Translations under genes and position numbers: made by a program
Part shown: in pieces, positions 738 to 20,557 of the stretch
How the letters are laid out: each line of letters begins with the position of its first letter
Numbering within the stretch: position 1 is the stretch's first letter
The notes under the pieces: generated by a model
What the model was told of the DNA's origin: nothing
The model's input: only the letters and a program-made list of their open reading frames with translations
The model's database searches: none
IMG/VR virus record: IMGVR_UViG_3300046092_000062
Coordinates: 256,768-320,767 of that record
Direction: 5' to 3' (one strand)
Length of the DNA stretch: 64,000 bases

Positions 738-911
738 ATGAGTAATAGAACGTGGTTTGAAGAACCGGGCGAGCCTATCGCCCCATGCGAAGATTGTCCC
801 GACCCAGGTAATTGCTGCCTGACACGATGCGGGATCCAAGAATACCTTAAAGAAGATACAGCAGATATTCGTGGCGAAACCGATGAACAGCTTCGAGGAG
901 ACTGCGAATGA
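738..911 (+). CDS. small Cys-rich protein
   Basis: strong SD; CEDC...CCLTRC; ATGA overlap with polymerase start. Confidence 0.55.
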   Translation: MSNRTWFEEPGEPIAPCEDCPDPGNCCLTRCGIQEYLKEDTADIRGETDEQLRGDCE

Positions 912-3577
912 GTTATGTTGACGCAATCTTTGACAGAGCAAAAGACAAGATCCATGTAGTAGAACGAGTTAACGGCGAACGTGTTTTTCGTGAATACCCA
1001 GCCGAGTATATGTTTTATTACGACGATCCACGCGGCAAGTTTCGCACCATCTACGACACACCGGTGTCTAGATTCAGTACTCGCAACAACAAAGAGTACC
1101 AGAAAGAGCTACGCATCAACAGCGACAAGAGACTTTGGGAAAGCGATATTAACCCAATCTTTCGTTGCCTTGAAAGCAACTACTTAGGCGCTAACTCACC
1201 TAAGCTACAAACAGCCTTTTTCGACATTGAGGTCGACTTTGATCCAGTACGCGGTTACAGTCGACCTGAAGATCCCTTTAACCCAATTACAGCTATCTCA
1301 GTGTACCTAGACTGGTTAGACAAGATGGTTACTCTAGTAGTACCACCTAAGACCTATAGCTGGGAAACTGCACAAGAGATTTGCAATCGCTTTGAAAACT
1401 GCTATCTGTTTGAAAAAGAAAAGGACATGCTAGACACGTTCCTTGACTTGATTGAAGACGCAGACATCCTAAGTGGTTGGAACAGTGAAGGTTTCGATAT
1501 TCCCTATACCACAATGCGTATTACTAAGGTGTTGAGTAAAGACGACACACGTAGACTGTGCCTGTGGGGACAAATGCCAAAGCAGCGTATGTTTGAACGC
1601 TTTGGTGCAGAACAACTAACCTTTGACTTGTTGGGTCGTGTGCATTTGGACTATATGCAACTGTACCGCAAGTACACATATGAAGAACGACACAGTTATA
1701 GTTTGGACGCCATTGGCGAATACGAACTAGATGAGCGTAAGACAGCCTACGAAGGCACGTTGGACCAATTGTACAACAAAGACTTTCCTACGTTTATTGA
1801 ATATAACAGACAAGATACCATGTTGTTAGCAAAGCTAGACAAGAAACTACGTTTCCTAGATCTTGCTAACGAACTTGCACACGACAACACCGTGTTGTTA
1901 CAGACCACAATGGGTGCGGTAGCTGTGACGGAGCAGGCGATTATTAACGAAGCTCACGCAAGAGGTATGATTGTTCCTAATAGAAAGAGTCGAGATGATC
2001 AAGGTGAAACACAAGCGGCAGGTGCCTACGTTGCTTACCCCAAAAAGGGAGTACACAACTACATCGGAGCGATTGACATTAACTCGCTCTACCCCTCGGC
2101 TATTCGAGCCCTTAACATGGGCCCAGAAACAATCGTCGGGCAACTGCGAACCACAATGACCGACAAGTATATTGCAGACAAAATGGCCGCAGGGTCTAGT
2201 TTTGCAGATGCTTGGGAAAACATGTTTGGTACACTAGAGTATCAAGCAGTAATGGAAGGCAAGCCCGGTACAGAGATTACAATCGACTGGGAAGGTGGCG
2301 GAGAAACTGTACACAGTGCAGCGGATGTGTGGAAGATTATCTTCGAAGGTAATCAACCTTGGACTATCAGTGCCAACGGTACAATTTTTAAATATGACAT
2401 GAAGGGTATTATTCCCGGACTGCTAGAAAGATGGTATGCCGAACGAAAAGAAATGCAAGCTAAAAAGAAGACCGCAACGACTCCTGAGGACACAGCGTTC
2501 TGGGACAAGCGACAGCTCGTCAAAAAAATTAACCTCAATAGCTTATATGGCGCCATCCTCAATGCAGGGTGTCGCTTCTTCGATCAGCGCATTGGTCAGA
2601 GCACAACGCTTACTGGCCGGATTATCGCCAAGCATATGGACGCGACAGTCAACGAAGCGATTACTGGCAAATATGACCACGTTGGTGACTCGGTTATCTA
2701 CGGTGACACAGACTCGGTATACTTTAGTGCGTGGCCTGCCATTAAAGCGGAAGTAGAAGCAGGTACTATGGAGTGGAACAAGGACATCTGCGTTCAACTC
2801 TATGATACCATTGCGGATGGAGTTAACGATAGCTTTCCAGAATTCATGGAACGTGCATGTCACTGTCCCCGAGAAATGGGTGCTATCATTAAAGGTGGTC
2901 GTGAACTAGTTGCATACAAAGGTTTGTTTATCAAGAAGAAACGTTATGCAGTGCTAATTTACGATTTGGAAAACAAGCGATTGGATACAGATGGTAAGCC
3001 AGGCAAAGTTAAGGCCATGGGTCTTGACTTGAAGCGTAGTGATACACCTAAGATTGTGCAAGACTTCCTGAGCGAGATTTTGCTTGATGTGTTGACTAGC
3101 GAAGGTGACGATGTACGCCAAGTTGTTATTGACAAGGTGCGTAACTTTAAACTAGAGTTTGCTGCAAAGCCAGCTTGGGAAAAGGGCACACCTAAACGTG
3201 TAAACAACTTGACCAAGTACACTGCGGCAGAAGTTGCACAAGGCAAAGCCAACATGCCAGGACACGTTCGTGCTGCAATGAACTGGAACAGCCTAAAGCG
3301 TATGCACGGTGACAACTACTCAACAGGCATTGTTGACGGTATGAAGACTATTGTATGTAAGCTAAAGGATAATCCATTAGGTTATACCAGCGTTGGTTAC
3401 CCAACTGACGAAGCACACATTCCGCAATGGTTCAAGGACTTGCCGTTTGACCAAGACCTAATGGAAACTACTATTGTAGACCAAAAGGTTGAGAACTTGT
3501 TGGGAGTATTGGAGTGGAAGATCTCCGAGAGCACCGACATTAAAACAACGTTTGATAGTTTGTTTAGCTGGGAATAA
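908..3577 (+). CDS. polB: family B DNA polymerase (T4 gp43-like) with 3'-5' exonuclease
   Basis: FDIE (ExoI), GWNSEGFD (ExoII), YNRQD (ExoIII), DINSLYPS, KKINLNSLYG, YGDTDS, KKRY. Confidence 0.97.
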   Translation: MSYVDAIFDRAKDKIHVVERVNGERVFREYPAEYMFYYDDPRGKFRTIYDTPVSRFSTRNNKEYQKELRINSDKRLWESDINPIFRCLESNYLGANSPKLQTAFFDIEVDFDPVRGYSRPEDPFNPITAISVYLDWLDKMVTLVVPPKTYSWETAQEICNRFENCYLFEKEKDMLDTFLDLIEDADILSGWNSEGFDIPYTTMRITKVLSKDDTRRLCLWGQMPKQRMFERFGAEQLTFDLLGRVHLDYMQLYRKYTYEERHSYSLDAIGEYELDERKTAYEGTLDQLYNKDFPTFIEYNRQDTMLLAKLDKKLRFLDLANELAHDNTVLLQTTMGAVAVTEQAIINEAHARGMIVPNRKSRDDQGETQAAGAYVAYPKKGVHNYIGAIDINSLYPSAIRALNMGPETIVGQLRTTMTDKYIADKMAAGSSFADAWENMFGTLEYQAVMEGKPGTEITIDWEGGGETVHSAADVWKIIFEGNQPWTISANGTIFKYDMKGIIPGLLERWYAERKEMQAKKKTATTPEDTAFWDKRQLVKKINLNSLYGAILNAGCRFFDQRIGQSTTLTGRIIAKHMDATVNEAITGKYDHVGDSVIYGDTDSVYFSAWPAIKAEVEAGTMEWNKDICVQLYDTIADGVNDSFPEFMERACHCPREMGAIIKGGRELVAYKGLFIKKKRYAVLIYDLENKRLDTDGKPGKVKAMGLDLKRSDTPKIVQDFLSEILLDVLTSEGDDVRQVVIDKVRNFKLEFAAKPAWEKGTPKRVNNLTKYTAAEVAQGKANMPGHVRAAMNWNSLKRMHGDNYSTGIVDGMKTIVCKLKDNPLGYTSVGYPTDEAHIPQWFKDLPFDQDLMETTIVDQKVENLLGVLEWKISESTDIKTTFDSLFSWE

Positions 3578-3580
3578 CCC

Positions 3581-4516
3581 ATGACTATGAAACTACACGA
3601 TGTTGTAGAGCTACAGCAAGCTCTTGTGGACTTAGTGCCTACCAAAGGCATCGAACACGAGATTGATGCTATAGTGGGCAATATTGATCTAATCAAGGGA
3701 AAGTACACAGAAGACTATGCCTACAGATTAGATCAATTGCAAACTAGCCTACGAGAAATTAAGGCTAGTTTGCATAAGCCGTTGGCTCTAGTAGACGACA
3801 TTAAAGATATTGTTGGACAAGACCTAACTGATGCTACTGCTAAGTTTGATGCAGTTGATTATCAAGATGAATTGCGTTATGCCAATGCAGAACGTATACG
3901 TCAAGTACGTCAACTGTATGTGCCAAATGGTGCAGACGAAATTGTTACTAGGGCTATTGACTTATATGTTGATTGGCGCTATCCTGGATTGGAAATTGGT
4001 TGCCGTGACGGTCATTGGACCAAGTATCTAGTAAGTTGCGATCCATTGTACATTACAGATGTGTTCCAGGAATTTTTGGATAGCACCTCTAGTAACTACC
4101 CTGAAGAGTACCAACAACGGTTGCGCCCATACTTGATCGAAAATCAAAATCTATCCATGCTACCACAGAATCAATTTGGTTTTGTGTTTAGCTGGAACTT
4201 CTTTAACTACCTGACGTTAGCTAACATTAAACATTACCTAACACAAGTACTCACTCTGCTTCGGCCAGGTGGAACATTTATGTTCAGTTACAACAATGCA
4301 GATTTAGCAGCGGGTGCAGCGTATGCTGACAGCTACTTTATGAGCTATGCACCTAAGCATCTTCTAATTCCCATTTGCGAAGAACTTGGGTATGAAGTAA
4401 TTGGTACAACTGATATTGAACCGGCAGTAAGTTGGTTAGAGATCAGAAAACCTGGCACACTTAAAATGATTAAAGCTCATCAAGTTTTAGGTGAAATAAA
4501 ATACGTTAACCCTTGA
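3581..4516 (+). CDS. class I SAM-dependent methyltransferase with N-terminal helical region
   Basis: GLEIGCRDG motif I; FGFVFSWNFFNY; LLRPGGTFMF. Confidence 0.75.
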   Translation: MTMKLHDVVELQQALVDLVPTKGIEHEIDAIVGNIDLIKGKYTEDYAYRLDQLQTSLREIKASLHKPLALVDDIKDIVGQDLTDATAKFDAVDYQDELRYANAERIRQVRQLYVPNGADEIVTRAIDLYVDWRYPGLEIGCRDGHWTKYLVSCDPLYITDVFQEFLDSTSSNYPEEYQQRLRPYLIENQNLSMLPQNQFGFVFSWNFFNYLTLANIKHYLTQVLTLLRPGGTFMFSYNNADLAAGAAYADSYFMSYAPKHLLIPICEELGYEVIGTTDIEPAVSWLEIRKPGTLKMIKAHQVLGEIKYVNP

Positions 4517-4541
4517 TATTTTCTAAATATATCTATATACT
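4513..4541 (+). promoter_or_regulatory. sigma70-type promoter with embedded TAAATA late-type box
   Basis: TTGATA(4513-4518)-17 bp-TATACT(4536-4541); TAAATA at 4524-4529. Confidence 0.55.
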
Positions 4542-4562
4542 ACACATTACATTGGAGAACAC

Positions 4563-5297
4563 ATGCAAGACAATCTAAAAGACATCGTACAGCACACATT
4601 TGGACTAGGTTCAATTGAGTTGGTTAAAGTGACCGGCACTGCAAGCGAAACAGTCCTAAACACAATCGCCGAAGACCGTTCGGTTATTGTTGAGGCTAAA
4701 TTTAAAAACCCAGTACCAGAATTTGTTGGTACGTTTGGTATGCCTAACTTGGGCAAACTAAAAACAATCCTTAACATCGAAGTATATCGCGACGATGCTA
4801 AGTTGAGCATTAACACACAGCAAAACTCTGCAGGCGAAACTGTTCCAGCTGGTATCCACTTTGAAAACAAAGATGGCGACTTTAAGAACGACTATCGCTT
4901 CATGAGTGCAGAAGTTGTTAACGACAAACTCAAAGCAGTCAAGTTCAAAGGCGTTCGTTGGGGTGTTGACGTAGTTCCTACTATTGCTAGCATCCAGCGT
5001 ATGCGCTTCATGGCTAGTGCTAACAGTGAAGAAACTACGTTTACTGCTAAAACAGAAAACGGAGCACTCAAGTTCTTCTTTGGTGACTCGTCAAGTCACG
5101 CAGGTAACTTTGTTTTTGATAACAACGTTAGTGGCACATTGACTAAGAGTTGGTCTTGGCCAGTAGACGCAGTTATCAGCATCCTTGGATTGCCAGGTGA
5201 CAAGACCTTCAAGATCAGCGACGAAGGTGCTGCAATGATTACCGTTGATAGCGGCATTGCTGATTACAGCTACATTATTCCTGCTCAACAAAAGTAA
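4563..5297 (+). CDS. sliding clamp / polymerase processivity factor (gp45-like)
   Basis: 244 aa, two-lobed beta/alpha pattern (FGMPNLGKLKTIL; final strands ISDEGAAMITVDSGIADYSYIIPA); next to polB. Confidence 0.65.
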   Translation: MQDNLKDIVQHTFGLGSIELVKVTGTASETVLNTIAEDRSVIVEAKFKNPVPEFVGTFGMPNLGKLKTILNIEVYRDDAKLSINTQQNSAGETVPAGIHFENKDGDFKNDYRFMSAEVVNDKLKAVKFKGVRWGVDVVPTIASIQRMRFMASANSEETTFTAKTENGALKFFFGDSSSHAGNFVFDNNVSGTLTKSWSWPVDAVISILGLPGDKTFKISDEGAAMITVDSGIADYSYIIPAQQK

Positions 5298-5923
5298 TGT
5301 CTTTAGGTCATCTGATACCTAGAGGATACCGTCCCGGTAGTGGGTTAATATCCCCTACTGGGATTTTCTATCTAAGTATCCCCAAGAATGCCAGCACATA
5401 TATGACCAACTTACTGGTTGCCAATGATTGGCGCCACAATGACGTATACAGTCCCGATATTAAGGAATGTATAGTTGTTCTACGTGATCCAGTTGATCGT
5501 TGGCTTAGCGGCTTTGCAACGTATGCAGCCAGCTGGTTGCTCGGGGAAGGATACGGCAGTGATCACTTTAGGGAAGACTACAATGATCTCACACAGCGAA
5601 TCATCTTTGATCAAATTGTATTTGACGACCACACCACCGAACAAGTAAAATACGTTGAGCAACTAGGTGACCGTAAGATTACATTCTTTAAACTCAATTA
5701 CGAGTTAGGAATGAACTTAGAAAGTTTTTTAGATTGCAAGCTAGGTCTAAATAACCCTATAGCAGATAACGCAGGCGAAGACAATTACGATACTAAAATG
5801 ATTGCCAAGCACATGAGATTCAGAGTAGAACAAGATCCAGTTCTACGTGCTAAGATCATTGCGCGATATGCTGCTGACTACGAACTAATTAAAACAGCAA
5901 ACTATTACAATGAGCCAAGATAA
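5297..5923 (+). CDS. sulfotransferase family protein
   Basis: 5'-PSB-like YLSIPKNAST and 3'-PB-like VLRDPVDRWLSG. Confidence 0.75.
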   Translation: MSLGHLIPRGYRPGSGLISPTGIFYLSIPKNASTYMTNLLVANDWRHNDVYSPDIKECIVVLRDPVDRWLSGFATYAASWLLGEGYGSDHFREDYNDLTQRIIFDQIVFDDHTTEQVKYVEQLGDRKITFFKLNYELGMNLESFLDCKLGLNNPIADNAGEDNYDTKMIAKHMRFRVEQDPVLRAKIIARYAADYELIKTANYYNEPR

Positions 5924-7604
5924 TTTAACAAGCAAACAAAAAGATTACGCAGTATTCTTGCCAGCTATCAGTGGCTTCTACGGTACGTTTGTGGGCAAAC
6001 AGCGTGTTAACAATGACTATGTCGACCCAGCACGTTTCCCGCAAGGACTAACCGACATGGAGCAGATGAACTGGCTTAACGATCAAAAGGGCTTGTTCCC
6101 GTATAAGTGGAGTCTATATTCAGGTGGACATGCTAACTTGGATCTCACTAAAGAAGATGCAAGCGAAGACATGGTTCGCAAACGTGACCCAAACACTATC
6201 CTGCTAGGTGACTCGGGAGGATTCCAGATTGCCAAGGGCTTGTGGGAAGGCGAGTGGCGTGATCTTAATAGCCAAGAAGTTAAAGACAAAATGGCCGCAA
6301 TGGTAGCACTAGGTGTAGAAGTTAAGCCGGTGCTAGACAAAGCTGGTAACCCTGTTATTGGCAAGAAAGGTCCGAAGACTATCACAATCGACCATGCTAA
6401 AAACTATCAAAACTTAATTGATGCAGCACAAAAGAAACGTGGTGCTGTTCTAACGTGGTTAGATAGTATCAGCAATTACGGCATGGGATTGGATATTCCA
6501 ACTTGGGTTATCCATGACAAGAAAGCCAGCGATGCGTGTGGTATTAAAACTCTTGACGAAGCTGTTGCAGCTACAAAGTATAACAACGAATACTTCATGG
6601 CGCAACGCAAAGGCAAGAACAATGGCGGCGCTAAGTTCCTAAACGTGTTGCAAGGTGACAATCACAACAGTGCCGAAGATTGGTACCAAGTAATGAAAGA
6701 GTACTGTGATCCTGTTAAGTATCCTGATACACACTTTGATGGCTGGGCAATGGGAGGTCAAAACATGTGTGACGTACACTTGATTTTGAAACGTCTAGTA
6801 GCACTACGTTATGACAACTTACTACAAGAGGGCAAGCATGATTGGATGCACTTCTTGGGCACAAGTAAACTAGAGTGGGCTGTGTTGCTTACTGTTATCC
6901 AGCGAGCTGTGAGAAAATATGTCAATCCTTCTTTTACTATCTCTTTTGATTGCGCTAGCCCTTTTCTTGCAACAGCTAACGGCCAGGTATACTTCGAAAA
7001 CGTATTTCCGCACAACGGAAAGTGGAGCTACAGAATGGCTCCAAGTGCAGACGACAAAAAGTACGCCACTGACACACGCAAATGGTCAGACGGAGTGGTA
7101 CAAGACGGCATTTACCCACGCTGGGAAGACAGTCCCCTTAGTGACATGTTTAAAATGAAAGATATTTGCATCTACAAGCCAGGCGATCTTAATAAGATTG
7201 GCAAAGAAGGTGCAACATCATGGGACAGCTTTAGCTACGCATTGCTTATGGGACATAACGTATGGATGCACCTTACTGCGGTACAAGAAGCTAATAGACG
7301 TTTTGATGCAGGCGAACATCCTGCTATGATGCGATCAGAAAAGCCACTTGCACCTTACTTTGAAGATATTGTCGAAGCTATTTTTGCAGCACCCGATCGT
7401 GAAACAGCAGAAGAGATTATTGAAATGTACGGCGGCCCCAATGGTTACTGGACTGAGATTATTGGCACTCGTGGATTTAAAGGCAAGAAGGCAGTAAGCG
7501 CTCGCCCAATGTTTGATAAACTATTTGACGTAGAAGATCCTGTCAATGACGACGACACTGAATTCAACGAAGCAGCACTAGACAACTTAGAGGATACACA
7601 ATGA
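5910..7604 (+). CDS. dpdA: tRNA-guanine transglycosylase-like DNA 7-deazaguanine insertion enzyme (DpdA family)
   Basis: TGT catalytic motif DSGGFQ; LDIP; NVLQG; MHFLG; SFDCAS; clustered with folE/queD/queE in a phage. Confidence 0.8.
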   Translation: MSQDNLTSKQKDYAVFLPAISGFYGTFVGKQRVNNDYVDPARFPQGLTDMEQMNWLNDQKGLFPYKWSLYSGGHANLDLTKEDASEDMVRKRDPNTILLGDSGGFQIAKGLWEGEWRDLNSQEVKDKMAAMVALGVEVKPVLDKAGNPVIGKKGPKTITIDHAKNYQNLIDAAQKKRGAVLTWLDSISNYGMGLDIPTWVIHDKKASDACGIKTLDEAVAATKYNNEYFMAQRKGKNNGGAKFLNVLQGDNHNSAEDWYQVMKEYCDPVKYPDTHFDGWAMGGQNMCDVHLILKRLVALRYDNLLQEGKHDWMHFLGTSKLEWAVLLTVIQRAVRKYVNPSFTISFDCASPFLATANGQVYFENVFPHNGKWSYRMAPSADDKKYATDTRKWSDGVVQDGIYPRWEDSPLSDMFKMKDICIYKPGDLNKIGKEGATSWDSFSYALLMGHNVWMHLTAVQEANRRFDAGEHPAMMRSEKPLAPYFEDIVEAIFAAPDRETAEEIIEMYGGPNGYWTEIIGTRGFKGKKAVSARPMFDKLFDVEDPVNDDDTEFNEAALDNLEDTQ

Positions 7605-8104
7605 TCAGAGAAGGACACGAAGAAGTTAGATTCTTTCAAGGCAAGGAAGTAGAGCATACTCCTGCATTTGGAAAACAAACTCTATTTGTAGTGGGCGTAC
7701 AGCCATTAGCAGATATTGCCCTAAACCTACGCGGTGCGGACCATATCTACTTTGGTGCCAACATGAGCTTTCCCAATCCTGCAATAAACGATCCAGTTTG
7801 GAACGATTGGGAAAATATGATTCGACCCTTCTTGGATAAAGGGTACACTTGTACGCTAGATATTGACTCGAAATGTGCAGAAGGATTGCTAGAAAGTTCT
7901 CTGTGCGAGCATCATAACTTCATCCCAATGATTTCGGTGAAACTGCCGTATTTACAACAGCTAGGTTATAATGCTACAATCAAGCTAGATGACAAAGACT
8001 TTGCAGCAACTAACCCCGGTGTTTGGTGCCACAGTGTTCACAACCTTATGGATCGAAAAGTATTTACTGATTGGTCCAGCTATACGAAAGACGAAACTTT
8101 ATGA
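7601..8104 (+). CDS. hypothetical protein coupled to dpdA
   Basis: ATGA overlap; alpha/beta pattern (TLFVVG, HIYFGAN, CTLDID). Confidence 0.75.
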   Translation: MIREGHEEVRFFQGKEVEHTPAFGKQTLFVVGVQPLADIALNLRGADHIYFGANMSFPNPAINDPVWNDWENMIRPFLDKGYTCTLDIDSKCAEGLLESSLCEHHNFIPMISVKLPYLQQLGYNATIKLDDKDFAATNPGVWCHSVHNLMDRKVFTDWSSYTKDETL

Positions 8105-8286
8105 ACAATCTCAGTAAAGAGCAGTTACGTCTTGTGATTGCAGAAATGCGCCCAGACATCTCAGACAGCGACTTTGAAGCTATGTGGGAAGAAATGCAAA
8201 CTGCATGTACTACTCACTACTCAGAAGTAGCAAACGAAGTCATTGACTTACATACCACAACCGACTCACAAGGAATTATTAGATGA
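8101..8286 (+). CDS. hypothetical protein
   Basis: ATGA overlaps at both ends. Confidence 0.55.
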   Translation: MNNLSKEQLRLVIAEMRPDISDSDFEAMWEEMQTACTTHYSEVANEVIDLHTTTDSQGIIR

Positions 8287-9009: not shown

Positions 9010-9417
9010 ATGAGCGCCGCAACTGACATGGGCCAAGCAGAGTTTGACCTACAACGGGTCATGGATCTGTTTGACACTGCCCTAACCAGTAAAGATGAGC
9101 GTGTAGTAAACGCCCTTCGCAGTCTGTTGATGATTGTGGCGCTTACCAATCCCGAAGACGCCGATGCTAAAGGTGATATCGGTCCACTACGTGCAATGGA
9201 ACGTGATTTAAATTCCATGCACAGTCGTATTCGCAGTCTAGAAGACCAAGTACGCCATATTACTGATGCACTGTCTCAGCACAATACCGCTGCTCAATCA
9301 TATAACTCGTATAACTGGCGACCATCTAACCCTTATGCGAGAGATGTGTGGGGACAGGATAAGAGCAATATCACCATGCGCGATTACTTCACAAAAATTA
9401 ACGGAGGTCCCATTTAA
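9010..9417 (+). CDS. hypothetical coiled-coil protein
   Basis: heptad segment LRAMERDLNSMHSRIRSLEDQV; TAATG junction. Confidence 0.65.
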   Translation: MSAATDMGQAEFDLQRVMDLFDTALTSKDERVVNALRSLLMIVALTNPEDADAKGDIGPLRAMERDLNSMHSRIRSLEDQVRHITDALSQHNTAAQSYNSYNWRPSNPYARDVWGQDKSNITMRDYFTKINGGPI

Positions 9418-10595
9418 TGGGTAAGCTATATTACATGGGGTTAGAGAGTTACAAAGCTCGCTACACCCTGCAACTAACAGAATGGAACAAACGTGTCTTT
9501 GATCGCCGTGGCGTTGAAGCAGTATATGTTCCAGGTCTAACACTAGATAACAGTCAAAAGATTGTTACAGGACAAGTACTGGACGCACACGGTCGCAGCT
9601 ACTTTGGTATGAGCCAGATTATGAATTTGGTTCGATTAATGCAACAAGGAGCAGTGACTAAAGATGATGTTGTATATTTCGAAGACATGTTCCAACCAGG
9701 AATCGAAAGCCTACCCTACATCCTTAAACAAATCCCAGAGGCGTCGCGCCCAAGAATCTTTGTTCGTTGTCTCGCTCAGTCTATTGACCCTGACGATTTC
9801 GTACATGTTTGGGGAATGGGTGAATTTATGGGTCACTATGAACGCATGGTGGACAGCTTTGTTGATGGTGTGTTGGCCACTAATGAAGAAATGGTAATGC
9901 ACATGAAGATTGCAGGTTGGAAATCACCAATCTACAATATTTCAGGATTGGTGTTTAACACCGAAGAAGTGCAAGAGCGGGTGGGTAACAAGATTACTCC
10001 CTGGAATGAGCGCAAGCCCCGCGTGGTATTCTCTGCACGTTGGGACCAAGAGAAGCAACCAGACTTCTATATGGATGTAATCGAATCATGGCACAAACGT
10101 CATCCCGGCTCAGGCGTGGAGTTTGCAGTATGCTCGGGTGCAACACTAAAGAGCAACAATGACAGCTACATGAAGCGCACACGTGATATGCAGGCAGCAG
10201 GCTCGTTGACCATTTACGAAGACCTAGAAAAGAATCAGTACTATGACATTGTTAATAACTCTCGTGTTGTTTTTAATTGTGCATTACAAGATTGGGTCTC
10301 CAATACTGTCTCCGAAGCTGACGCTTTGGGATGCAATGTACTTTATCCTGCTTATCGTTCTTTCCCTGAAACTTTTGCAAACGATCATACTCGCATGTAC
10401 GTTCCGTGGAGCATAGATGACGCATTAGACAAGTTGGAAAAACTGTTGCAGAAGCCAAGTGAGAACATGGGCAAGATTAGCGCATGGACTAGTGGCACCG
10501 CTGATCGCATTGTTGACATTATTGAAGGCAAGGGCGAAAAGTGGTTGCGTATGTCAACTGACTATCGCAAACATACACATGAGTCTAAGTACTAA
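9417..10595 (+). CDS. GT-B fold glycosyltransferase (GT4-like)
   Basis: VVFSARWDQEKQP; VSEADALGCNVLYP; SFPE, typical of the nucleotide-sugar-binding domain. Confidence 0.8.
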   Translation: MGKLYYMGLESYKARYTLQLTEWNKRVFDRRGVEAVYVPGLTLDNSQKIVTGQVLDAHGRSYFGMSQIMNLVRLMQQGAVTKDDVVYFEDMFQPGIESLPYILKQIPEASRPRIFVRCLAQSIDPDDFVHVWGMGEFMGHYERMVDSFVDGVLATNEEMVMHMKIAGWKSPIYNISGLVFNTEEVQERVGNKITPWNERKPRVVFSARWDQEKQPDFYMDVIESWHKRHPGSGVEFAVCSGATLKSNNDSYMKRTRDMQAAGSLTIYEDLEKNQYYDIVNNSRVVFNCALQDWVSNTVSEADALGCNVLYPAYRSFPETFANDHTRMYVPWSIDDALDKLEKLLQKPSENMGKISAWTSGTADRIVDIIEGKGEKWLRMSTDYRKHTHESKY

Positions 10596-11632: not shown

Positions 11633-12616
11633 ATGTCAAAGACCGTTATTGTCACTGGCGGATGTGGGTACATTGGTAGTCACGTTGCACGGGCTTTCAA
11701 ACAAGAAGGCTACGCCGTACACATTGTTGACACTGTTTACCGTGAACACACTGTCAAGGACATTGACGGTCATTTGATCAATTGCTTTGCTAGCAAAGCT
11801 GCACTCAGCATGTACATCATGCTGCAACCAGACATTATTGTGCATTGTGCAGGCACTAGTCTAGTTGGTCCAAGCATAACTAATCCAGCAGAGTATTACG
11901 ATAACAACGTTAGTAAGACTATTAAGATGCTGGATGTCTTAAAGGATTTACCAAAGCGTCCCACTATTATGTTTAGTAGTAGCGCCAGCGTGTATGGCGT
12001 CCCTAAAGAATCACCGATAACAATAAACAGCCCCTTACAGCCAATTAGCCCATACGGTTCAACTAAGATGATTGTTGAGCAAGTGCTAAAGGATTACGGC
12101 AGTGCATATGGATTCAACACCATTTGCTTTAGATATTTTAATGCTGCCGGCGCAGCGGCAACTGGTGACTTAGGGCAAGAACCTGATGCAACACATCTAG
12201 TTGCACGTACAGTTGAAGCAAGCCTAAGCGGCAGATTAGTTACTATCAATGGTGACGACTTTGACACACTAGATGGTACCTGCGTTCGTGACTACGTACA
12301 CGTTTGGGATATTGCCGTGGCACACACTAAGGCAGCGGAATTCTTTGCTATCCATTATGGCCCAGACACCATTGCTGGACATCATGTGTTTAACTTAGGC
12401 ACTGGTAGCGGGTACAGTAACAAGGAAATTGTTGACTACGTTTACGAAACATACGGATTGACTACAGTCAAGTATGGCCCACGTAGACCCGGCGACCCAG
12501 ACTTATTAGTAGCAGATCCATCGGTAGCTAACTCAGTATTGGGATGGTATCCAATTAACAGCAGTATAAAAAACATCATTGATACAGCATATAACTGGTA
12601 CAAGAATCGTGTTTGA
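11633..12616 (+). CDS. galE: UDP-glucose 4-epimerase
   Basis: TGGCGYIGSH, FSSSASVYG, YGSTK, RYFNAAG, DGTCVRDYVHV, RRPGDP. Confidence 0.9.
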   Translation: MSKTVIVTGGCGYIGSHVARAFKQEGYAVHIVDTVYREHTVKDIDGHLINCFASKAALSMYIMLQPDIIVHCAGTSLVGPSITNPAEYYDNNVSKTIKMLDVLKDLPKRPTIMFSSSASVYGVPKESPITINSPLQPISPYGSTKMIVEQVLKDYGSAYGFNTICFRYFNAAGAAATGDLGQEPDATHLVARTVEASLSGRLVTINGDDFDTLDGTCVRDYVHVWDIAVAHTKAAEFFAIHYGPDTIAGHHVFNLGTGSGYSNKEIVDYVYETYGLTTVKYGPRRPGDPDLLVADPSVANSVLGWYPINSSIKNIIDTAYNWYKNRV

Positions 12617-13214
12617 TAAAATTAAGAAATTTGAACTTGCGCTAGCAGAATTTACTGGCGCACCATATGCAATCATGACCGATTGCTGCACACATGCAAT
12701 TGAACTGTGCCTACGATATGATAAGATCACTGAGTGCTCATTCACTCCTTACACGTATTTGAGCATCCCAATGACAATGCACAAGCTAGGCATCAACTAT
12801 AGCTACTTTCCAGACACGTTACCACATCGTCAACAATGGGTTGGTGAATACAAGTTTGAAGCTACTCGAATTTGGGACAGTGCAAGACGACTAGAAGAAA
12901 ACATGTACCGTCCGGGAATGATGCAATGTTTAAGTTTTGGACATACAAAGCCTTTACACATTGGCCGCGGTGGTGCTATACTACTAGACGACAAGTCAGC
13001 ATATGATGCGTTAATTTTAATGCGCTATGATGGACGCGACCTAAATATTAAACCATGGGAATCTCAGAAAGAATTCAGAGTTGGGTATCACTATAAACCC
13101 ACGCCAGAAGAAGCAGTACAAGGACTTGCACTACTACAGGGCGTTAAGGTTAATAAACCCAAACCAGTAACAGTTGAGTACCCAGACCTAAGAACAATCA
13201 CTATCAAGGACTAA
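12609..13214 (+). CDS. short DegT/DnrJ/EryC1/StrS-type PLP-dependent enzyme
   Basis: FELALAEFTG, DCCTHAIELCL, IWDSAR, SFGHTKPLHIGRGG (PLP Lys); only ~201 aa; GTG start chosen. Confidence 0.75.
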   Translation: MFDKIKKFELALAEFTGAPYAIMTDCCTHAIELCLRYDKITECSFTPYTYLSIPMTMHKLGINYSYFPDTLPHRQQWVGEYKFEATRIWDSARRLEENMYRPGMMQCLSFGHTKPLHIGRGGAILLDDKSAYDALILMRYDGRDLNIKPWESQKEFRVGYHYKPTPEEAVQGLALLQGVKVNKPKPVTVEYPDLRTITIKD

Positions 13215-13215
13215 A

Positions 13216-13917
13216 ATGACAGATACAAGTAAAAACTTATCACAAGTTATTCGCGACAAGATGCGAGCAGACAACAAACGCTTCTGGGCGGGCGACAACA
13301 TCAGTGAGTATGTTGGCGAAGAAGAAAAAGAATCGTTAATTAGCGAAGCAGCAGAAGCATTTGAAAAAGTACTTGACACACTATTGATTGACCGCGAAAA
13401 TGATCCGAACTCAAAAGGCACAGCAAGGCGTCTTGCAAAAATGTACTACAACGAAATTATGGCTGGGCGGTACGATGCAAGCCCTAGCGCAACTGCGTTT
13501 CCCAATGATAGCGATGGCGCATACGACGGAATGTTGGTTGTGCGCAGTGAGCTTAAAAGCATGTGTAGCCACCATCACCAACCTGTTACGGGTGTGGCTT
13601 ACATTGGCATTATTGCTGGACAGAAACTCATCGGACTATCGAAGTATACCAGGATTGCACAGTGGTGCGCAAGACGAGGAACACTACAAGAAGAGCTCTG
13701 TATGGACATCGCTCGTGAGATTGAACTTGCAACTGGATCACAAGACGTTGCAGTTTATATTCAGGCTACCCACGGATGTTGTGAGAATCGTGGTATCATG
13801 GCTCACTCTAGTCTTACTCAGACCACAGTACTACGCGGAGCCTTTAAAGAAGACGCAAGCGTAAAGAAAGAGTTCTTTGACAACATCAAATTGCAACAAG
13901 AGTTTGCACCACGCTAA
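13216..13917 (+). CDS. folE: GTP cyclohydrolase I
   Basis: SMCSHH, IGLSKYTR, LQEEL, HGCCENRG. Confidence 0.95.
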   Translation: MTDTSKNLSQVIRDKMRADNKRFWAGDNISEYVGEEEKESLISEAAEAFEKVLDTLLIDRENDPNSKGTARRLAKMYYNEIMAGRYDASPSATAFPNDSDGAYDGMLVVRSELKSMCSHHHQPVTGVAYIGIIAGQKLIGLSKYTRIAQWCARRGTLQEELCMDIAREIELATGSQDVAVYIQATHGCCENRGIMAHSSLTQTTVLRGAFKEDASVKKEFFDNIKLQQEFAPR

Positions 13918-14914: not shown

Positions 14915-15249
14915 TTGCACTACCACCAGGATGCACTGTAACCTATGCAGTATGGATTGACGTTAAGGAAATGACCACTGAACTTATCGAGTGGTGCGAA
15001 CTAGTTGGTGGCCGTAAGAAAGTCGACAGCTACTACAATCATCGTGGCAACAAAGTCGATACAGAGTACATTGCATTTGGAAAAGCCAAGTGGTGTCACT
15101 ATCATCAAAATGGCAATGGTGGTGTACGCCTACACTTTCACGGCGACGATGCTTCAACTGCGAGCATGTTCTTGCTCAAGTTTATGGACAACGTAACCGC
15201 ACACAATTTAAAAGAAGTACAAGATAGAGTAGAACATGGATTTGTTTAA
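14911..15249 (+). CDS. hypothetical protein (dispersed small phage family)
   Basis: ATGA overlap; RLHFHGDDASTASMFLLKF motif. Confidence 0.65.
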   Translation: MIALPPGCTVTYAVWIDVKEMTTELIEWCELVGGRKKVDSYYNHRGNKVDTEYIAFGKAKWCHYHQNGNGGVRLHFHGDDASTASMFLLKFMDNVTAHNLKEVQDRVEHGFV

Positions 15250-16057
15250 AGGACCAGTGCCGCGACTGTTTGGGCACAAAGATAGTTTAAAAGATAACAA
15301 GTTTTTTGCATCCAACAAGTTTGTTATTAACCAACAGTTTGAAGCATTTACTAACATCTGTCCGCATCGCGGATTTCCTATTTTGCAGCCATCTGGTGTA
15401 GCAGACAACATGCGCTGCGAGCTACACGGATGGCAATGGAACGATGACGGGACACCTGCTAATAACTCAGCGTGTTTAAAGCCACGTAGGCTCACAGTAG
15501 GCAAAAGCGGGCTGATGTTTATGGACTGGCAAGAACCCTCTGATGCTAAATGGGTTAACGATTTGGCTAATGATTCGTTTACGTATAGTCATAGCACACG
15601 CCGAACTGGCACCGGTGATTGGAAGTGGCAAATGGAAATGCACGTGGATCTGCTGCACGTTGACAAGATTCATCCTTTGCTAACCAGTTACGTAGATATA
15701 AACAAACTTCAAACTGAATACGGTAGTGATTGGGTGTGCCAGCACCACGAACACGGATGGTGGTTATTTGTGTATCCATTTACTCATATTGAATGGGAAC
15801 CAGGATGCTTGTACTTTAGTGAAATGGTGCAGACAAACTACGGGTACGAGGTATACATCCATTACTTGTTTAACGAGTCTACTCCGCAGCATGTGCGTGA
15901 AAACTTTATCAAAGTAGCAGAAGTTACATTCGACGAAGACGTGGACGCAGTTAATCGACTATCTCTAAACAATAAATACAGAACACCATCAAAAACTCTT
16001 GACCCACTGGAAGTAGATATTAAGCACTTCTATGATTGGTATAAGGCAAACACATAA
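15236..16057 (+). CDS. Rieske non-heme iron oxygenase alpha-subunit-like protein
   Basis: Rieske CPHRG...CELHGWQW; mononuclear Fe motif EMHVDLLHVDKIH; distal ED. Confidence 0.85.
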   Translation: MDLFKGPVPRLFGHKDSLKDNKFFASNKFVINQQFEAFTNICPHRGFPILQPSGVADNMRCELHGWQWNDDGTPANNSACLKPRRLTVGKSGLMFMDWQEPSDAKWVNDLANDSFTYSHSTRRTGTGDWKWQMEMHVDLLHVDKIHPLLTSYVDINKLQTEYGSDWVCQHHEHGWWLFVYPFTHIEWEPGCLYFSEMVQTNYGYEVYIHYLFNESTPQHVRENFIKVAEVTFDEDVDAVNRLSLNNKYRTPSKTLDPLEVDIKHFYDWYKANT

Positions 16058-18695: not shown

Positions 18696-19193
18696 ATGAC
18701 ACCCGTTCAATACAAATACACCAGTACCAAAGAGTACCACAACGCCTTTCCTGTTGCTTACAGACAATGGCGAGCAGACAGCCACTGCAATCTAATTCAC
18801 GGCTATGCGTTTAGCATGAAGTTCTATTTTGGAACCAATGACCTAGACGTTCGTAACTGGGCTGCTGACTACGGCGGCCTCAAGGAACTGAAGAAAACAC
18901 TAGAAGATCAATTTGACCATACATTGATTGTGGCACAGGATGATCCAGAAATGGAAACATTCAAATTGCTACAAGAAAAGAACATGGCCAAGATTGTAGT
19001 GTTGCCAGCACTAGGTTGCGAAGCACTAAGCGATATGCTTTACAAGTATGTCAATGGCGTTTACATTCCTGAGATGTGGGGACCAGGTGAAGCGGCACGT
19101 TTATGGTGCTATCGCGTTGAAGTACGTGAAACACAGAGCAACATGGCGTACCGCGAAGGTCACCGTGAATGGAATGAGGACTTGTTTGCATGA
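18696..19193 (+). CDS. queD: 6-carboxy-5,6,7,8-tetrahydropterin synthase
   Basis: HCNLIHGY, DYGGLK, FDHT, GCEAL, VEVRET. Confidence 0.88.
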   Translation: MTPVQYKYTSTKEYHNAFPVAYRQWRADSHCNLIHGYAFSMKFYFGTNDLDVRNWAADYGGLKELKKTLEDQFDHTLIVAQDDPEMETFKLLQEKNMAKIVVLPALGCEALSDMLYKYVNGVYIPEMWGPGEAARLWCYRVEVRETQSNMAYREGHREWNEDLFA

Positions 19194-19486
19194 GCAAGCA
19201 GGAACAAGAAATCATGGATATTCTGCAAGAAGAATGTGCAGAAGTAATCCAAGCAGTTAGCAAAGCCCGTCGATTTGGCCTAGATAACTCTCACAAGTCT
19301 GGTAAGACACAGCGTCAGAATCTAGAAACAGAAATAGGCGATGTGCTTTGCATGATTGAACTGCTAAATGAGCGTGGAGTAATTGACGCCTCTAGCGTAC
19401 AAGCTGCTATCCTTGCCAAGCGAGAAAAGCTACACCACTGGTCAAATATTTTTAAGGATGACTCATGCACCCCAACATCGAAGTAA
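19190..19486 (+). CDS. MazG-like NTP pyrophosphohydrolase
   Basis: LQEECAEVIQAVSK...LETEIGDVL (ExxE..ExxD). Confidence 0.8.
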   Translation: MSKQEQEIMDILQEECAEVIQAVSKARRFGLDNSHKSGKTQRQNLETEIGDVLCMIELLNERGVIDASSVQAAILAKREKLHHWSNIFKDDSCTPTSK

Positions 19487-19684: not shown

Positions 19685-20557
19685 ATGTTTGGAACAAATG
19701 AAATTATTGGTAAGAAGTATTTTAAGGATGCTCCGGCAGACAGCTTGTTTGTAACTAGCATGTTCTTTACACTACAAGGCGAAGGTCCTTATGCAGGTAT
19801 GCCCGCATTGTTTATTCGATTGGCTAAGTGTAATCTAGTGTGCAGCTTCTGTGATACATTCTTTGACGACGGTGATTGGATGACGTACGATCAAATCGAA
19901 GGCAAAATGTATGCAGCTATCAACGACTATTGGAACAACCAAGGCAAAGCAACGCCAACATGGGCAAACAATGGGTTAAATAACTATCCCGGTATTGTGT
20001 TGGTAATGACTGGCGGCGAACCTCTCCTGCAGGAGAACATTAGTGCATTTATGACACGTCAACTTGCACATTTCAAGGCAGTTCAGGTCGAAAGTAACGG
20101 CATTCCTGTTACTGATGTTCCTGCCGGTGTAACGCTAGTGTGTAGCCCTAAATGTGCTGAGAAAGATGGCAAGGCCATCAAGTACTTTGCGCCGTCGGCA
20201 ACTATCCTGCAACGTGCAGACTGTTTGAAGTTTGTTATGAGTGCGGATGCAGATAGTCCGTATAACAGCGTACCGCAGTGGGCACATGACTGGAAGGCAG
20301 CAACAGGCAAAGAGATCTATTGCAGCCCGATGAACGTGTACAACAGTTTCCCACAGAAGATCAAATTGCTTCGTGCAGAAAAAGGCAACATCACAATGGC
20401 TGAACGCAGCACAGTTGATGAAGTTATCAGCTTCTGGGAACCGGGCTTGTTGGACTTGAAAGCTAACCAAGCTAACCATGAGTACGCTGCACACTATTGC
20501 ATCGAACATGGTTTCAAACTCAACCTGCAAATGCACTTATATGCGAGCCTAGCATAA
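19685..20557 (+). CDS. queE: 7-carboxy-7-deazaguanine synthase (radical SAM)
   Basis: TLQGEG, FIRLAKCNLVCSFCDT, TGGEPLLQ, VESNG, CSPK, LNLQMH. Confidence 0.93.
   Translation: MFGTNEIIGKKYFKDAPADSLFVTSMFFTLQGEGPYAGMPALFIRLAKCNLVCSFCDTFFDDGDWMTYDQIEGKMYAAINDYWNNQGKATPTWANNGLNNYPGIVLVMTGGEPLLQENISAFMTRQLAHFKAVQVESNGIPVTDVPAGVTLVCSPKCAEKDGKAIKYFAPSATILQRADCLKFVMSADADSPYNSVPQWAHDWKAATGKEIYCSPMNVYNSFPQKIKLLRAEKGNITMAERSTVDEVISFWEPGLLDLKANQANHEYAAHYCIEHGFKLNLQMHLYASLA

Follow-up and report, generated by a model that had tools for sequence, protein, structure and literature searches.

A predicted clamp-binding tail on the DpdA-like DNA-modifying enzyme of a jumbo phage

A polymerase-like peptide is found near the C-terminus of a DpdA-like protein

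Why would a predicted DNA-modifying enzyme carry, in a flexible tail, the same short peptide that ends the DNA polymerase of the same phage? To address this question, we analyzed a 64,000-nucleotide stretch of DNA (the window; positions 256,768 to 320,767 of IMG/VR virus record IMGVR_UViG_3300046092_000062) from a 320,767-bp genome. The original prediction, made from sequence alone, was that a DpdA protein encoded two genes after the sliding clamp shares an FDxLF peptide with the polymerase C-terminus, and that it rides the clamp and modifies DNA co-replicatively, in analogy to T4 gp43, gp33 and gp55, which bind the gp45 clamp through a C-terminal hydrophobic (S/T)LDFL-type peptide. The relevant genes are:

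908..3577, plus strand: family-B replicative DNA polymerase, 889 aa (Pfam DNA_pol_B 2.4e-37, DNA_pol_B_exo1 1.2e-17; phrog_262 6.7e-190)
3545..3574, plus strand: polymerase C-terminal peptide TTFDSLFSWE (FDSLF at 3551-3565), the presumed clamp-binding tail
3581..4516, plus strand: SAM-dependent methyltransferase-domain protein, 311 aa (Pfam Methyltransf_12/25/23/11)
4563..5297, plus strand: sliding clamp (PCNA/gp45-type two-domain protomer by predicted fold), 244 aa
5297..5923, plus strand: sulfotransferase-like protein, 208 aa (weak match; Pfam Sulfotransfer_2 2e-4, below the cut-off; phrog_3347 7e-4)
5910..7604, plus strand: DpdA-like protein with a predicted TGT fold, 564 aa, catalytic domain about residues 1-521

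Translation confirms the shared peptide, and the observation is therefore real. The polymerase ends in DIKTTFDSLFSWE and the 564-aa protein in GTRGFKGKKAVSARPMFDKLFDVEDPVNDDDTEFNEAALDNLEDTQ, with PMFDKLFDVE at residues 533-542 and FDKLF at residues 535-539 (7512-7526). The DpdA-like gene is the second gene after the clamp gene. The 5-mer alone is not beyond chance. F[DNT]xLF occurs 4 times among 1004 ORFs of the genome, while about 2 instances per proteome are expected by our own composition estimate. The two other instances are internal, one in a tail-fibre-like protein and one in a protein of unknown function, and the looser FxxLF pattern also hits a fatty-acid desaturase near its C-terminus. 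We take all three as chance matches. Three features lift the match above chance: the extended pattern FxxLFx[FWYVL][EDG] is found only in the polymerase and the DpdA-like protein, both instances lie at or near a C-terminus, and the motif is conserved across relatives. DNA-level copying is rejected as an explanation for the peptide identity, as 19 of 30 nucleotides are identical in the window and the identical 9-mer of the related locus L173 uses different codons.

Predicted folds support the clamp and DpdA assignments

The original prediction assumed the identities of both the clamp and the DpdA protein, and these needed checking because no Pfam, NCBIfam or PHROG model names either protein. 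A megablast search of 900-8200 against a phage collection gave no match. The clamp candidate has no Pfam hit and matches only phrog_12062 of unknown function. Its AF2 model has a pLDDT of 90.4 and the top 50 listed Foldseek PDB hits are all PCNA (probability 1.0, TM 0.6-0.72), confirming the clamp label by fold. Homologues sit between the polymerase and DpdA-like genes in Pseudomonas phage PA5oct (36% identity), Vibrio phage 2.275.O (33%) and the related locus L088 (28%). The PA5oct clamp is EST35_0314. Three copies fold together with a pLDDT of 91, although ring geometry was not reported and loading was not examined. No clamp loader was identified in the window, including among ten further ORFs. 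An AAA+ ATPase at 31900-33000 matched only generic 'ATPase' PHROG families and looked MoxR-like by eye, which was not tested. The FEN-like exonuclease ends in NYVDFLSKAYPE, which is not the shared motif.

The DpdA-like protein is supported by several lines of evidence, including a catalytic motif and nearby pathway genes:

6210..6227, plus strand: DSGGFQ (residues 101-106), the TGT-type catalytic Asp motif
13216..13917, plus strand: GTP cyclohydrolase I (FolE), first step of 7-deazaguanine synthesis (PF01227, 4.8e-41, above the cut-off)
18696..19193, plus strand: QueD, 6-pyruvoyl-tetrahydropterin synthase family (PF01242, 2e-15, above the cut-off)
19685..20557, plus strand: possible QueE-like radical-SAM protein (weak match; PF04055, 0.0019, below the cut-off), at the same relative position as the annotated QueE of PA5oct

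The AF2 model has a pLDDT of 92 and its top 50 Foldseek PDB hits are all tRNA-guanine transglycosylases, led by those of Z. mobilis and mouse (probability 1.0, E 3e-8, TM by target about 0.5). BFVD hits include a Motura 'tRNA guanine transglycosylase' and an uncharacterized 464-aa protein of Vibrio phage nt-1. An hhalign comparison with nt-1 DpdA2 gave 93.6% (E 2e-7) and aligned DSGGxQ (VDSGGLQ in nt-1), D..P, HxLG and S[FY]D. D101, S102, G104, D195, H314 and D347 are invariant in 67 family members, and the aspartates D101, D195 and D347 are assigned to the TGT catalytic residues. In contrast, the Pfam TGT model PF01702 matched neither the protein, nor the whole genome in six frames, nor any of the 67 members, and sequence and profile searches gave no PDB hit. 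The Cys3-His zinc site of TGT enzymes is lacking, as no Cys column is invariant or nearly invariant in either of two family alignments and only H314 is conserved. QueC was not found in the genome and a PP-loop match is weak. Homologues of the enzyme do however lie next to FolE, QueD, QueC, QueF or QueE in 2.275.O (QueF, YhhQ, QueC and FolE), PA5oct (QueE), the related loci L085 and L086, and the P0352 contig. PA5oct DNA resists restriction at G-containing sites (PMC12191111) and the phage is said to hold a deazaguanine synthesis/incorporation system (PMC7824862). This evidence for 7-deazaguanine insertion is indirect, as the base content of virion DNA was not measured here. A phiST protein appeared only at Foldseek E 0.07, and the family was not placed relative to DpdA3. 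Overall, both labels hold at fold level.

The motif is a conserved island in a flexible tail and tracks the polymerase terminus

The tail of the enzyme contains the following features:

7473..7601, plus strand: low-confidence, acidic C-terminal tail (residues 522-564)
7491..7538, plus strand: predicted clamp-contacting peptide AVSARPMFDKLFDVED (residues 528-543), containing FDKLF (7512-7526)
7563..7592, plus strand: second conserved motif FNEAALDNLE (residues 552-561), an acidic helix with no known partner

Burial of the motif in the fold and lack of conservation in orthologues had both been named in advance as outcomes that would contradict clamp tethering, and neither was observed. Mean pLDDT per 10-residue block falls to 45, 52, 42, 68 and 62 from residue 521 onward, and the motif is not packed against the fold. 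F..[LMF]F occurs in the last 60 aa of 78/80 close and 50/77 distant DpdA-like ORFs, while the rate in other ORFs of 150 aa or more from the same loci is 15/1066 and 25/925 (1.4-2.7%). N.F..LF occurs in 37/77 against 1/925. The motif is conserved as an island in otherwise variable tails that cannot be aligned between distant homologues. The second motif, [FL][DN]x3-4LDxLE, also recurs in close and distant tails and is predicted to be helical (residues 554-563). At the extreme C-terminus of the polymerase, the consensus [TN]TF[DT]xLFx[FW]E is present in about 75 close loci and as NTFxKLFDFE in distant loci, with F..[LMF]F in the last 20 aa of 76/77 and 67/72 polymerase ORFs. The gene order polymerase, clamp, DpdA-like is conserved in about 150 loci and the clamp stop codon often overlaps the DpdA-like start. 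We also looked up family members without a tail to test whether they come from clamp-less genomes, but their contigs are too short to say. In sub-lineages that lost the motif at the usual place, an xLF/IF motif is found at the very C-terminus, for example VLNPDIFGV, PNLSIFEGL and FNPSLFESE.

In addition, the enzyme motif varies together with the polymerase terminus of the same genome. The polymerase and enzyme end in NNTDLFDW and NNNDLFGW in 2.275.O and in STFFEF and LSLFEF in L088, while the PA5oct polymerase ends in HFDSLFGW and its enzyme, EST35_0316, contains SFNSLFDVD. In L173, another related locus, both proteins contain the identical 9-mer NTFGSLFSF written in different codons, with 6 synonymous nucleotide differences. 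Over 92 unique pairs, same-genome identity at the non-anchor positions is 2.89 compared to 2.45 +/- 0.08 for permuted pairs, a value reached in 0 of 5000 permutations. This test does not correct for shared ancestry of the genomes. The characterized DpdA2 of nt-1, a phage with a T4-type replisome, lacks such a tail and ends in TTAEYPDFKS, which counts against the proposal. Overall, the motif behaves as a linear motif, a conserved island with positional mobility and co-variation with the other proposed clamp client.

A complex prediction places the tail on the peptide pocket of the clamp

Absence of clamp binding was the remaining outcome named beforehand as contradicting the proposal, and we examined it by predicting the complex of a clamp trimer with tail residues 519-564. 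The prediction gave an ipSAE score of 0.65, with the best of three controls at 0.10, and replacing the clamp with an unrelated protein lowered the score to 0.02. In the calibration of the method, this mark was reached by 58 of 80 solved complexes and 2 of 110 mismatched pairs, although the calibration does not strictly apply because our own alignment and a trimer were used. Clamp residues 124-131 (interdomain loop) and 238-244 (C-terminus) contact tail residues 528-535 and 538-543, corresponding in silico to the canonical pocket under the interdomain connecting loop. The second acidic motif is not in the confident interface. The same controlled prediction was not run for the polymerase peptide, a mutated tail, the second acidic motif or the host beta clamp. 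The pLDDT of the tail was about 50 and the score may reflect the model's memory of PCNA-peptide complexes. Predicted interface residues of the clamp are no more conserved than the rest of the protein (entropy 1.02 against 1.00, p = 0.63). The motif, (T/P)xFxxLFx(hydrophobic)(D/E), does not match the canonical PIP consensus Qxx[LIM]xx[FY][FY] and does not match the T4 SLDFL form exactly; in our reading it works like a PIP box but is not one. No binding experiment exists, and the interpretation that the enzyme is tethered to the clamp is well supported, but in silico only, with none of the three contradicting outcomes having been observed.

A proposed model for clamp-tethered guanine exchange

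We consider it likely that the 564-aa protein is a distant DpdA-type DNA guanine transglycosylase which would exchange guanine in duplex DNA for a 7-deazaguanine made by the FolE/QueD pathway of the phage. In this view, the flexible tail copies the extreme C-terminus of the polymerase, which, as in T4 and RB69, would plug into the hydrophobic pocket of the trimeric clamp beneath the interdomain connecting loop. The enzyme would occupy a free protomer of a loaded clamp or take the place of the polymerase, and would then be carried along phage DNA with or just behind the replication machinery, raising its local concentration and making it scan the duplex processively. Our analysis shows the motif and its position in a disordered tail, its conservation, relocation and co-variation with the polymerase terminus, the clamp and TGT folds and a controlled in silico interface, while real binding, the substrate and product of the enzyme, and whether it acts at the fork or on clamps left behind after synthesis are inferred. 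Co-replicative timing in particular was not examined.

Three alternatives were considered, all of which appear unlikely. First, the shared peptide could dock to another partner common to both proteins, such as the host beta clamp, whose QL[SD]LF-type motif is also an xLF peptide, the phage SSB, the helicase-primase or a clamp loader. The motif is not a textbook PIP or T4 motif, many family members read QFNALF, which loosely recalls the bacterial QLxLF motif, clamp interface residues show no extra conservation, and the second conserved acidic motif must bind something. However, in T4 and RB69 the extreme C-terminus of the family-B replicase is the clamp-binding element, the phage encodes its own PCNA-like clamp between the two genes in about 150 loci, and the controlled prediction places the motif in the pocket of that clamp.

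Second, and slightly less likely, the protein could be clamp-tethered but have another activity on DNA, such as a different base exchange or a glycosylase step feeding the neighboring methyl-, sulfo- and glycosyltransferases. The lack of Pfam TGT hits and zinc-site cysteines, the absence of QueC and the weak QueE match in this genome are consistent with this possibility. In addition, the gene is embedded among a methyltransferase, a sulfotransferase-like protein, a GT1 glycosyltransferase and an epimerase, and GT1, epimerase and FolE recur next to a distant homologue. The presence of FolE and QueD, the full preQ pathways flanking the 2.275.O homologue, the nearby QueE in PA5oct, whose DNA behaves as G-modified, and the alignment of catalytic Asp motifs with DpdA2 argue against it. 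Third, a role of the motif within the enzyme itself, as a dimerization or autoinhibitory element or a degron only coincidentally resembling the polymerase end, is very unlikely: the 5-mer is expected by chance and TGT enzymes act as dimers (PMC6884629), but the motif is a conserved island, relocates, tracks polymerase variants (DLFxW, FEF, NTFGSLFSF), is kept at the protein level in L173 despite different codons and is not packed on the domain by AF2.

Relation to known clamp clients and DpdA proteins

Short hydrophobic xLF-type peptides at or near a C-terminus are also used by the T4/RB69 polymerase gp43 and reused by non-polymerase proteins, gp33 and gp55, to ride the trimeric gp45 clamp, which has the same two-domain fold as the clamp described here. 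The gp45 clients gp33, gp55 and T4 ligase are the subjects of PMC7892883 and PMC6212786. The motif (T/N)xFxxLFx(F/W)(E/D) differs from SLDFL or SLFDMFDF, the client is a DNA base-exchange enzyme rather than a transcription factor, and the motif is usually internal to a tail and followed by a second acidic motif. The novelty claimed in the original prediction needs one qualification, as T4 alpha-glucosyltransferase is a phage DNA-modifying enzyme that binds gp45 and has been proposed to modify DNA concomitantly with replication. The pull-down was confirmed in PMC13216743, which cites Sommer et al. 2004, although this 2026 paper finds that the interaction is not the main determinant of the modification ratio. 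Its chemistry is glucosylation of hmC instead of guanine exchange, and we know of no shared polymerase-like peptide described for it.

Among phage DpdA families (DpdA1, DpdA2, DpdA3, DpdA4) and bacterial DpdA, which share the TGT fold and the link to FolE/QueD/QueE genes, the enzyme is closest to nt-1 DpdA2 by hhalign but is about 100 aa longer with large insertions. The DpdA literature calls the modification post-replicative (PMC10516641) and does not mention a clamp, and we found no paper linking DpdA to a clamp. Phage 2.275.O was listed in 2019 with pathway genes but no DpdA. The eukaryotic PCNA clients DNMT1 and UNG2 are similarly DNA-modifying or base-flipping enzymes tethered to the replication clamp through a short peptide in a disordered region, coupling their action to newly made DNA, but they belong to a different domain of life and use the PIP box, and the resemblance is functional only, without homology.

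Implications for DNA modification in jumbo phages

A more far-reaching possibility, which we regard as doubtful but not excluded, is that 7-deazaguanine insertion is a replisome function in a very large, mostly uncultured clade of jumbo phages that includes PA5oct and 2.275.O. The transglycosylase would ride the clamp directly behind the polymerase and replace guanines on nascent duplex, the neighboring methyl-, sulfo- and glycosyltransferases might then elaborate the base into a hypermodification not yet described, and the second acidic tail motif would recruit a further replisome partner. The clamp would then represent a general tool-belt for DNA modification and for the nucleases that carry the same peptide.

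The family is large, with more than 6,500 sequences matching among the 8,000 candidates scored in a 5.8-billion-sequence protein database and 875 representatives matching in a library clustered at 50% identity, and it includes the cultured phage PA5oct, which makes experiments feasible. It also defines the clamp-binding motif of this phage clade, which can be used to find further clamp clients. How some phages reach very high or complete guanine replacement is not explained (PMC10516641), and a polymerase-mimicking clamp peptide on the transglycosylase offers a concrete, testable mechanism for processive, replication-linked modification.

The FDxLF peptide in the polymerase and in a 564-aa protein

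The 320,767-bp viral record, of which the last 64 kb are considered here, is about 92% complete by CheckV's estimate. The following features of this window carry the peptide of interest, lie between the two proteins that contain it or belong to the same tail.

908-3577, family-B DNA polymerase (Pfam DNA_pol_B 2.4e-37; phrog_262 6.7e-190), ending in TDIKTTFDSLFSWE
4563-5297, sliding-clamp protomer by predicted fold, 244 aa
5910-7604, DpdA-like protein, 564 aa, ending in GTRGFKGKKAVSARPMFDKLFDVEDPVNDDDTEFNEAALDNLEDTQ
7512-7526, FDKLF, residues 535-539 of the DpdA-like protein
7563-7592, FNEAALDNLE, a second conserved element of the DpdA-like tail

The original prediction had stated that the 564-aa protein, taken to be DpdA, carries the same FDxLF peptide as the polymerase C-terminus, and this observation is confirmed at the position reported. 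The 5-mer by itself is weak evidence. F[DNT]xLF occurs four times among 1004 ORFs of the genome, the other two instances being internal, one in a tail-fibre-like protein and one in an unknown protein, and the looser FxxLF pattern also hits a fatty-acid desaturase near its C-terminus. The extended form FxxLFx[FWYVL][EDG], in contrast, is found only in the polymerase and the 564-aa protein.

Predicted folds of the clamp and the DpdA-like protein

Neither the clamp nor the DpdA-like protein is named by Pfam, NCBIfam or PDB sequence search, and PHROGs assigns the clamp only to phrog_12062 of unknown function. Folded with 33 homologues, the 244-aa protein gives a model with a pLDDT of 90.4 that shows two similar alpha/beta domains. 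The top 50 listed Foldseek PDB hits are all PCNA, at probability 1.0 and TM 0.6-0.72, and the protein is a sliding-clamp protomer.

Folded with 67 diverse homologues, the 564-aa protein gives a model with a pLDDT of 92. The compact domain runs to about residue 521, from where the 10-residue pLDDT means fall to 45, 52, 42, 68 and 62. Burial of the motif in the predicted fold had been named beforehand as an outcome that would count against a tethering role, but FDKLF forms a short isolated helix that is not packed on the domain. The top 50 PDB fold matches are all tRNA-guanine transglycosylases, at probability 1.0 and E 3e-8, and viral fold matches include the "tRNA guanine transglycosylase" of phage Motura and an uncharacterized 464-aa protein of Vibrio phage nt-1. 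The invariant residues of the family are S71, D101, S102, G104, D195, P197, H314 and D347, with D101-Q106 reading DSGGFQ, the TGT catalytic motif. The protein fails the Pfam TGT model in all 67 members tested and has no conserved zinc-site cysteines. Alignment of the family profile against nt-1 DpdA2 using hhalign gives 93.6% probability and E 2e-7 and aligns DSGGxQ, D..P, HxLG and S[FY]D. Together with the genomic context described below, this leads us to call the protein DpdA-like, nearest to DpdA2.

Genomic context fits 7-deazaguanine chemistry

Two genes of the 7-deazaguanine pathway pass their Pfam cut-offs in the window.

13216-13917, FolE
18696-19193, QueD

A weak radical-SAM match and a weak PP-loop match lie nearby, while QueC was not found in the genome. 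In Vibrio phage 2.275.O the homologue AUS03049 lies beside QueF, YhhQ, QueC and FolE; that phage was listed in 2019 with pathway genes but no DpdA. In PA5oct the homologue EST35_0316 lies 3 kb from QueE. PA5oct DNA resists G-containing restriction sites (PMC12191111), and PA5oct is said to hold a deazaguanine synthesis/incorporation system (PMC7824862). The QueD of the window ends in EWNEDLFA (about 19173-19190), kept as WNEDLF[AENV] in all close relatives. This loosely resembles the DLF-type clamp peptide of 2.275.O, but the whole protein is highly conserved and distant QueD copies lack the peptide, so that the resemblance may mean nothing.

Other enzyme genes surround the DpdA-like gene, at 3581-4516, 5297-5923, 9417-10595, 11633-12616, 12579-13214, 15236-16057 and 19190-19486: a SAM methyltransferase, a sulfotransferase-like protein, a GT1 glycosyltransferase, an NAD epimerase/dehydratase, a DegT-type aminotransferase fragment, a Rieske protein and MazG. 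GT1, epimerase and FolE also follow a homologue at 46% identity in marine contigs (2394-5301 of the related locus L086). This hints at further elaboration of the modified base or at a sugar pathway.

The tail peptide behaves as a short linear motif

Lack of conservation in DpdA orthologs had likewise been put forward as a refuting result. Among 120 close relatives at 70-95% identity, 87 have strict FxxLF in the last 60 residues, and nearly all the rest keep xLF or xLY at the same place. Sub-lineages in which that site has decayed (TKAKEHFVIEG) carry a new hydrophobic motif at the very C-terminus, for example VLNPDIFGV, LLTSLLFEGHE, PNLSIFEGL and FNPSLFESE. This kind of mobility is typical of a short linear motif and not of a structural element. 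In homologues at 25-50% identity the tails cannot be aligned, yet most still contain the peptide, as in TTFNELFKIED, SNFDNLFTVE, STLDSMFDY, KSLFEF and STFDQLFSIQE, all of which end at the stop codon. Over 160 fetched loci, F..[LMF]F in the last 60 aa is much more frequent in DpdA-like ORFs than in other ORFs of the same loci. The more specific N.F..LF occurs in 37/77 distant DpdA-like tails against 1/925 other ORFs.

Table. Occurrence of F..[LMF]F in the last 60 aa (polymerase, last 20 aa) over 160 loci.
ORF class; close loci; distant loci
DpdA-like; 78/80; 50/77
Polymerase (last 20 aa); 76/77; 67/72
Other ORFs of 150 aa or more; 15/1066; 25/925

A second conserved tail element follows the clamp-type peptide in close and distant homologues, including the tails of family members P0250, P0252, P0259, P0267 and P0275 and of related loci L094-L173. 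It is an acidic amphipathic helix of the form [FL][DN]x3-4LDxLE, or more loosely [FL][DN]x3-4(K/A)L(D/E)xLE, here FNEAALDNLE at residues 552-561; it has no assigned partner and lies outside the confident clamp interface. Other small proteins encoded near the DpdA-like gene in related phages (loci L053:8029-8586, L146:11512-12138, L100:6263-6712 and L121:12221-12808) end with the same peptide as the DpdA-like tail, namely TSTFKDLFK, NSTFQNLFAYDN, NQMFTSLFEEV and NEFNSLFDVEE..., the first three at the stop codon. One is an HNH endonuclease, and two share a D...EVK pattern that looks like a PD-(D/E)xK nuclease by eye. They may be further clamp clients. None has a homologue in this genome. A separate shared ending was seen outside the window, at G000:C1:191837-209406, where a family of at least eight small paralogous ORFs (72-123 aa) all end in (T/V)(M/L/I)F(M/V/A)LRW(S/A/T/Q).

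The tail tracks the polymerase terminus of the same genome

The gene order polymerase, (methyltransferase), clamp, (0-1 gene), DpdA-like holds in about 150 loci and also in PA5oct, 2.275.O and the related locus L088, and the clamp stop codon often overlaps the DpdA-like start. In PA5oct (MK797984; locus L084:5605-11658) the polymerase gene is split by a Hef-like homing endonuclease gene, and the clamp homologue EST35_0314 is annotated only as "structural protein" (ESI-MS/MS) although it is 36% identical to the clamp here. Family members without the tail (416-460 aa; L178:4798-7925, L179:493-3170 and the P0352 contig) instead sit directly after, and overlapping, an unnamed partner gene of 385-600 aa, and in one case integrase and resolvase genes are nearby rather than a polymerase and a clamp. 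This recalls bacterial dpdA-dpdB-type arrangements.

In same-genome pairs the polymerase always ends with the motif, and the variant matches the variant in the DpdA-like tail of that genome. In the related locus L173 the nine identical residues are encoded with six synonymous differences; the identity is therefore kept at the peptide level and is not a copied piece of DNA. Over 92 unique pairs, same-genome identity at the eight non-anchor positions is 2.89, against 2.45 +/- 0.08 for permuted pairs, in a test that is not corrected for shared ancestry. None of 5000 permutations reached the observed value.

Table. Polymerase and DpdA-like peptides of the same genome (L-numbers are related loci). 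Polymerase peptides all end at the stop codon; DpdA-like peptides that do so are marked "terminal".
Genome; polymerase end; DpdA-like tail
Window; TTFDSLFSWE; PMFDKLFDVE
PA5oct; HFDSLFGW; SFNSLFDVD
L088; STFFEF; LSLFEF (terminal)
2.275.O; NNTDLFDW; NNNDLFGW (terminal)
L119; NTFNKLFDFE; NEFNKLFDFD
L173; NTFGSLFSFD; NTFGSLFSFE

Complex prediction places the tail in the clamp client pocket

Modelling of a clamp trimer with the peptide had been suggested in advance as a check on tethering, and we folded three clamp copies with tail residues 519-564. The three runs scored 0.65, 0.65 and 0.64 while the controls scored 0.10, 0.00 and 0.02, and by the criterion of the method the model supports binding. 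In the method's calibration this mark was reached by 58 of 80 solved complexes and 2 of 110 mismatched pairs, which holds only roughly here because our own alignment and a trimer were used. A pass may also reflect memory of PCNA-peptide complexes, and the contacting clamp residues are no more conserved than the rest of the protein. The confident contacts are clamp 38-42, 124-131 (the interdomain connector), 198-200, 221-223 and 238-244 (the C-terminus) with tail 528-535 and 538-543. This is the canonical client pocket.

Comparison with known clamp clients and a likely mechanism

In T4 and RB69, the polymerase, gp33 and gp55 share a C-terminal hydrophobic clamp peptide. Related papers are PMC7892883 and PMC6212786. 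T4 alpha-glucosyltransferase binds gp45 and was proposed to act concomitantly with replication; the pull-down was reconfirmed in 2026, although the interaction was found not to set the alpha/beta ratio (PMC13216743). A clamp-bound phage DNA-modifying enzyme is therefore not a new category. The literature describes DpdA modification as post-replicative (PMC10516641), and full-text searches for DpdA or deazaguanine together with clamp found nothing that links them. The characterised DpdA2 of nt-1 lacks the tail, and its phage modifies only a few hundred bases per million nucleotides, a contrast that is suggestive and no more.

Overall, the proposal that the enzyme is tethered to the sliding clamp is supported in silico, and we consider it likely that the tail is a clamp-binding peptide. 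The shared peptide itself is established from the sequence, whereas its role rests on inference, as physical binding, the identity of the inserted base and the timing of modification were not measured, and the data do not distinguish action at the fork from action on clamps left on DNA after synthesis. In the most likely mechanism, the tail peptide mimics the polymerase C-terminus and docks the transglycosylase on a protomer of the loaded clamp, and the enzyme would then track along phage duplex DNA and exchange guanines processively.
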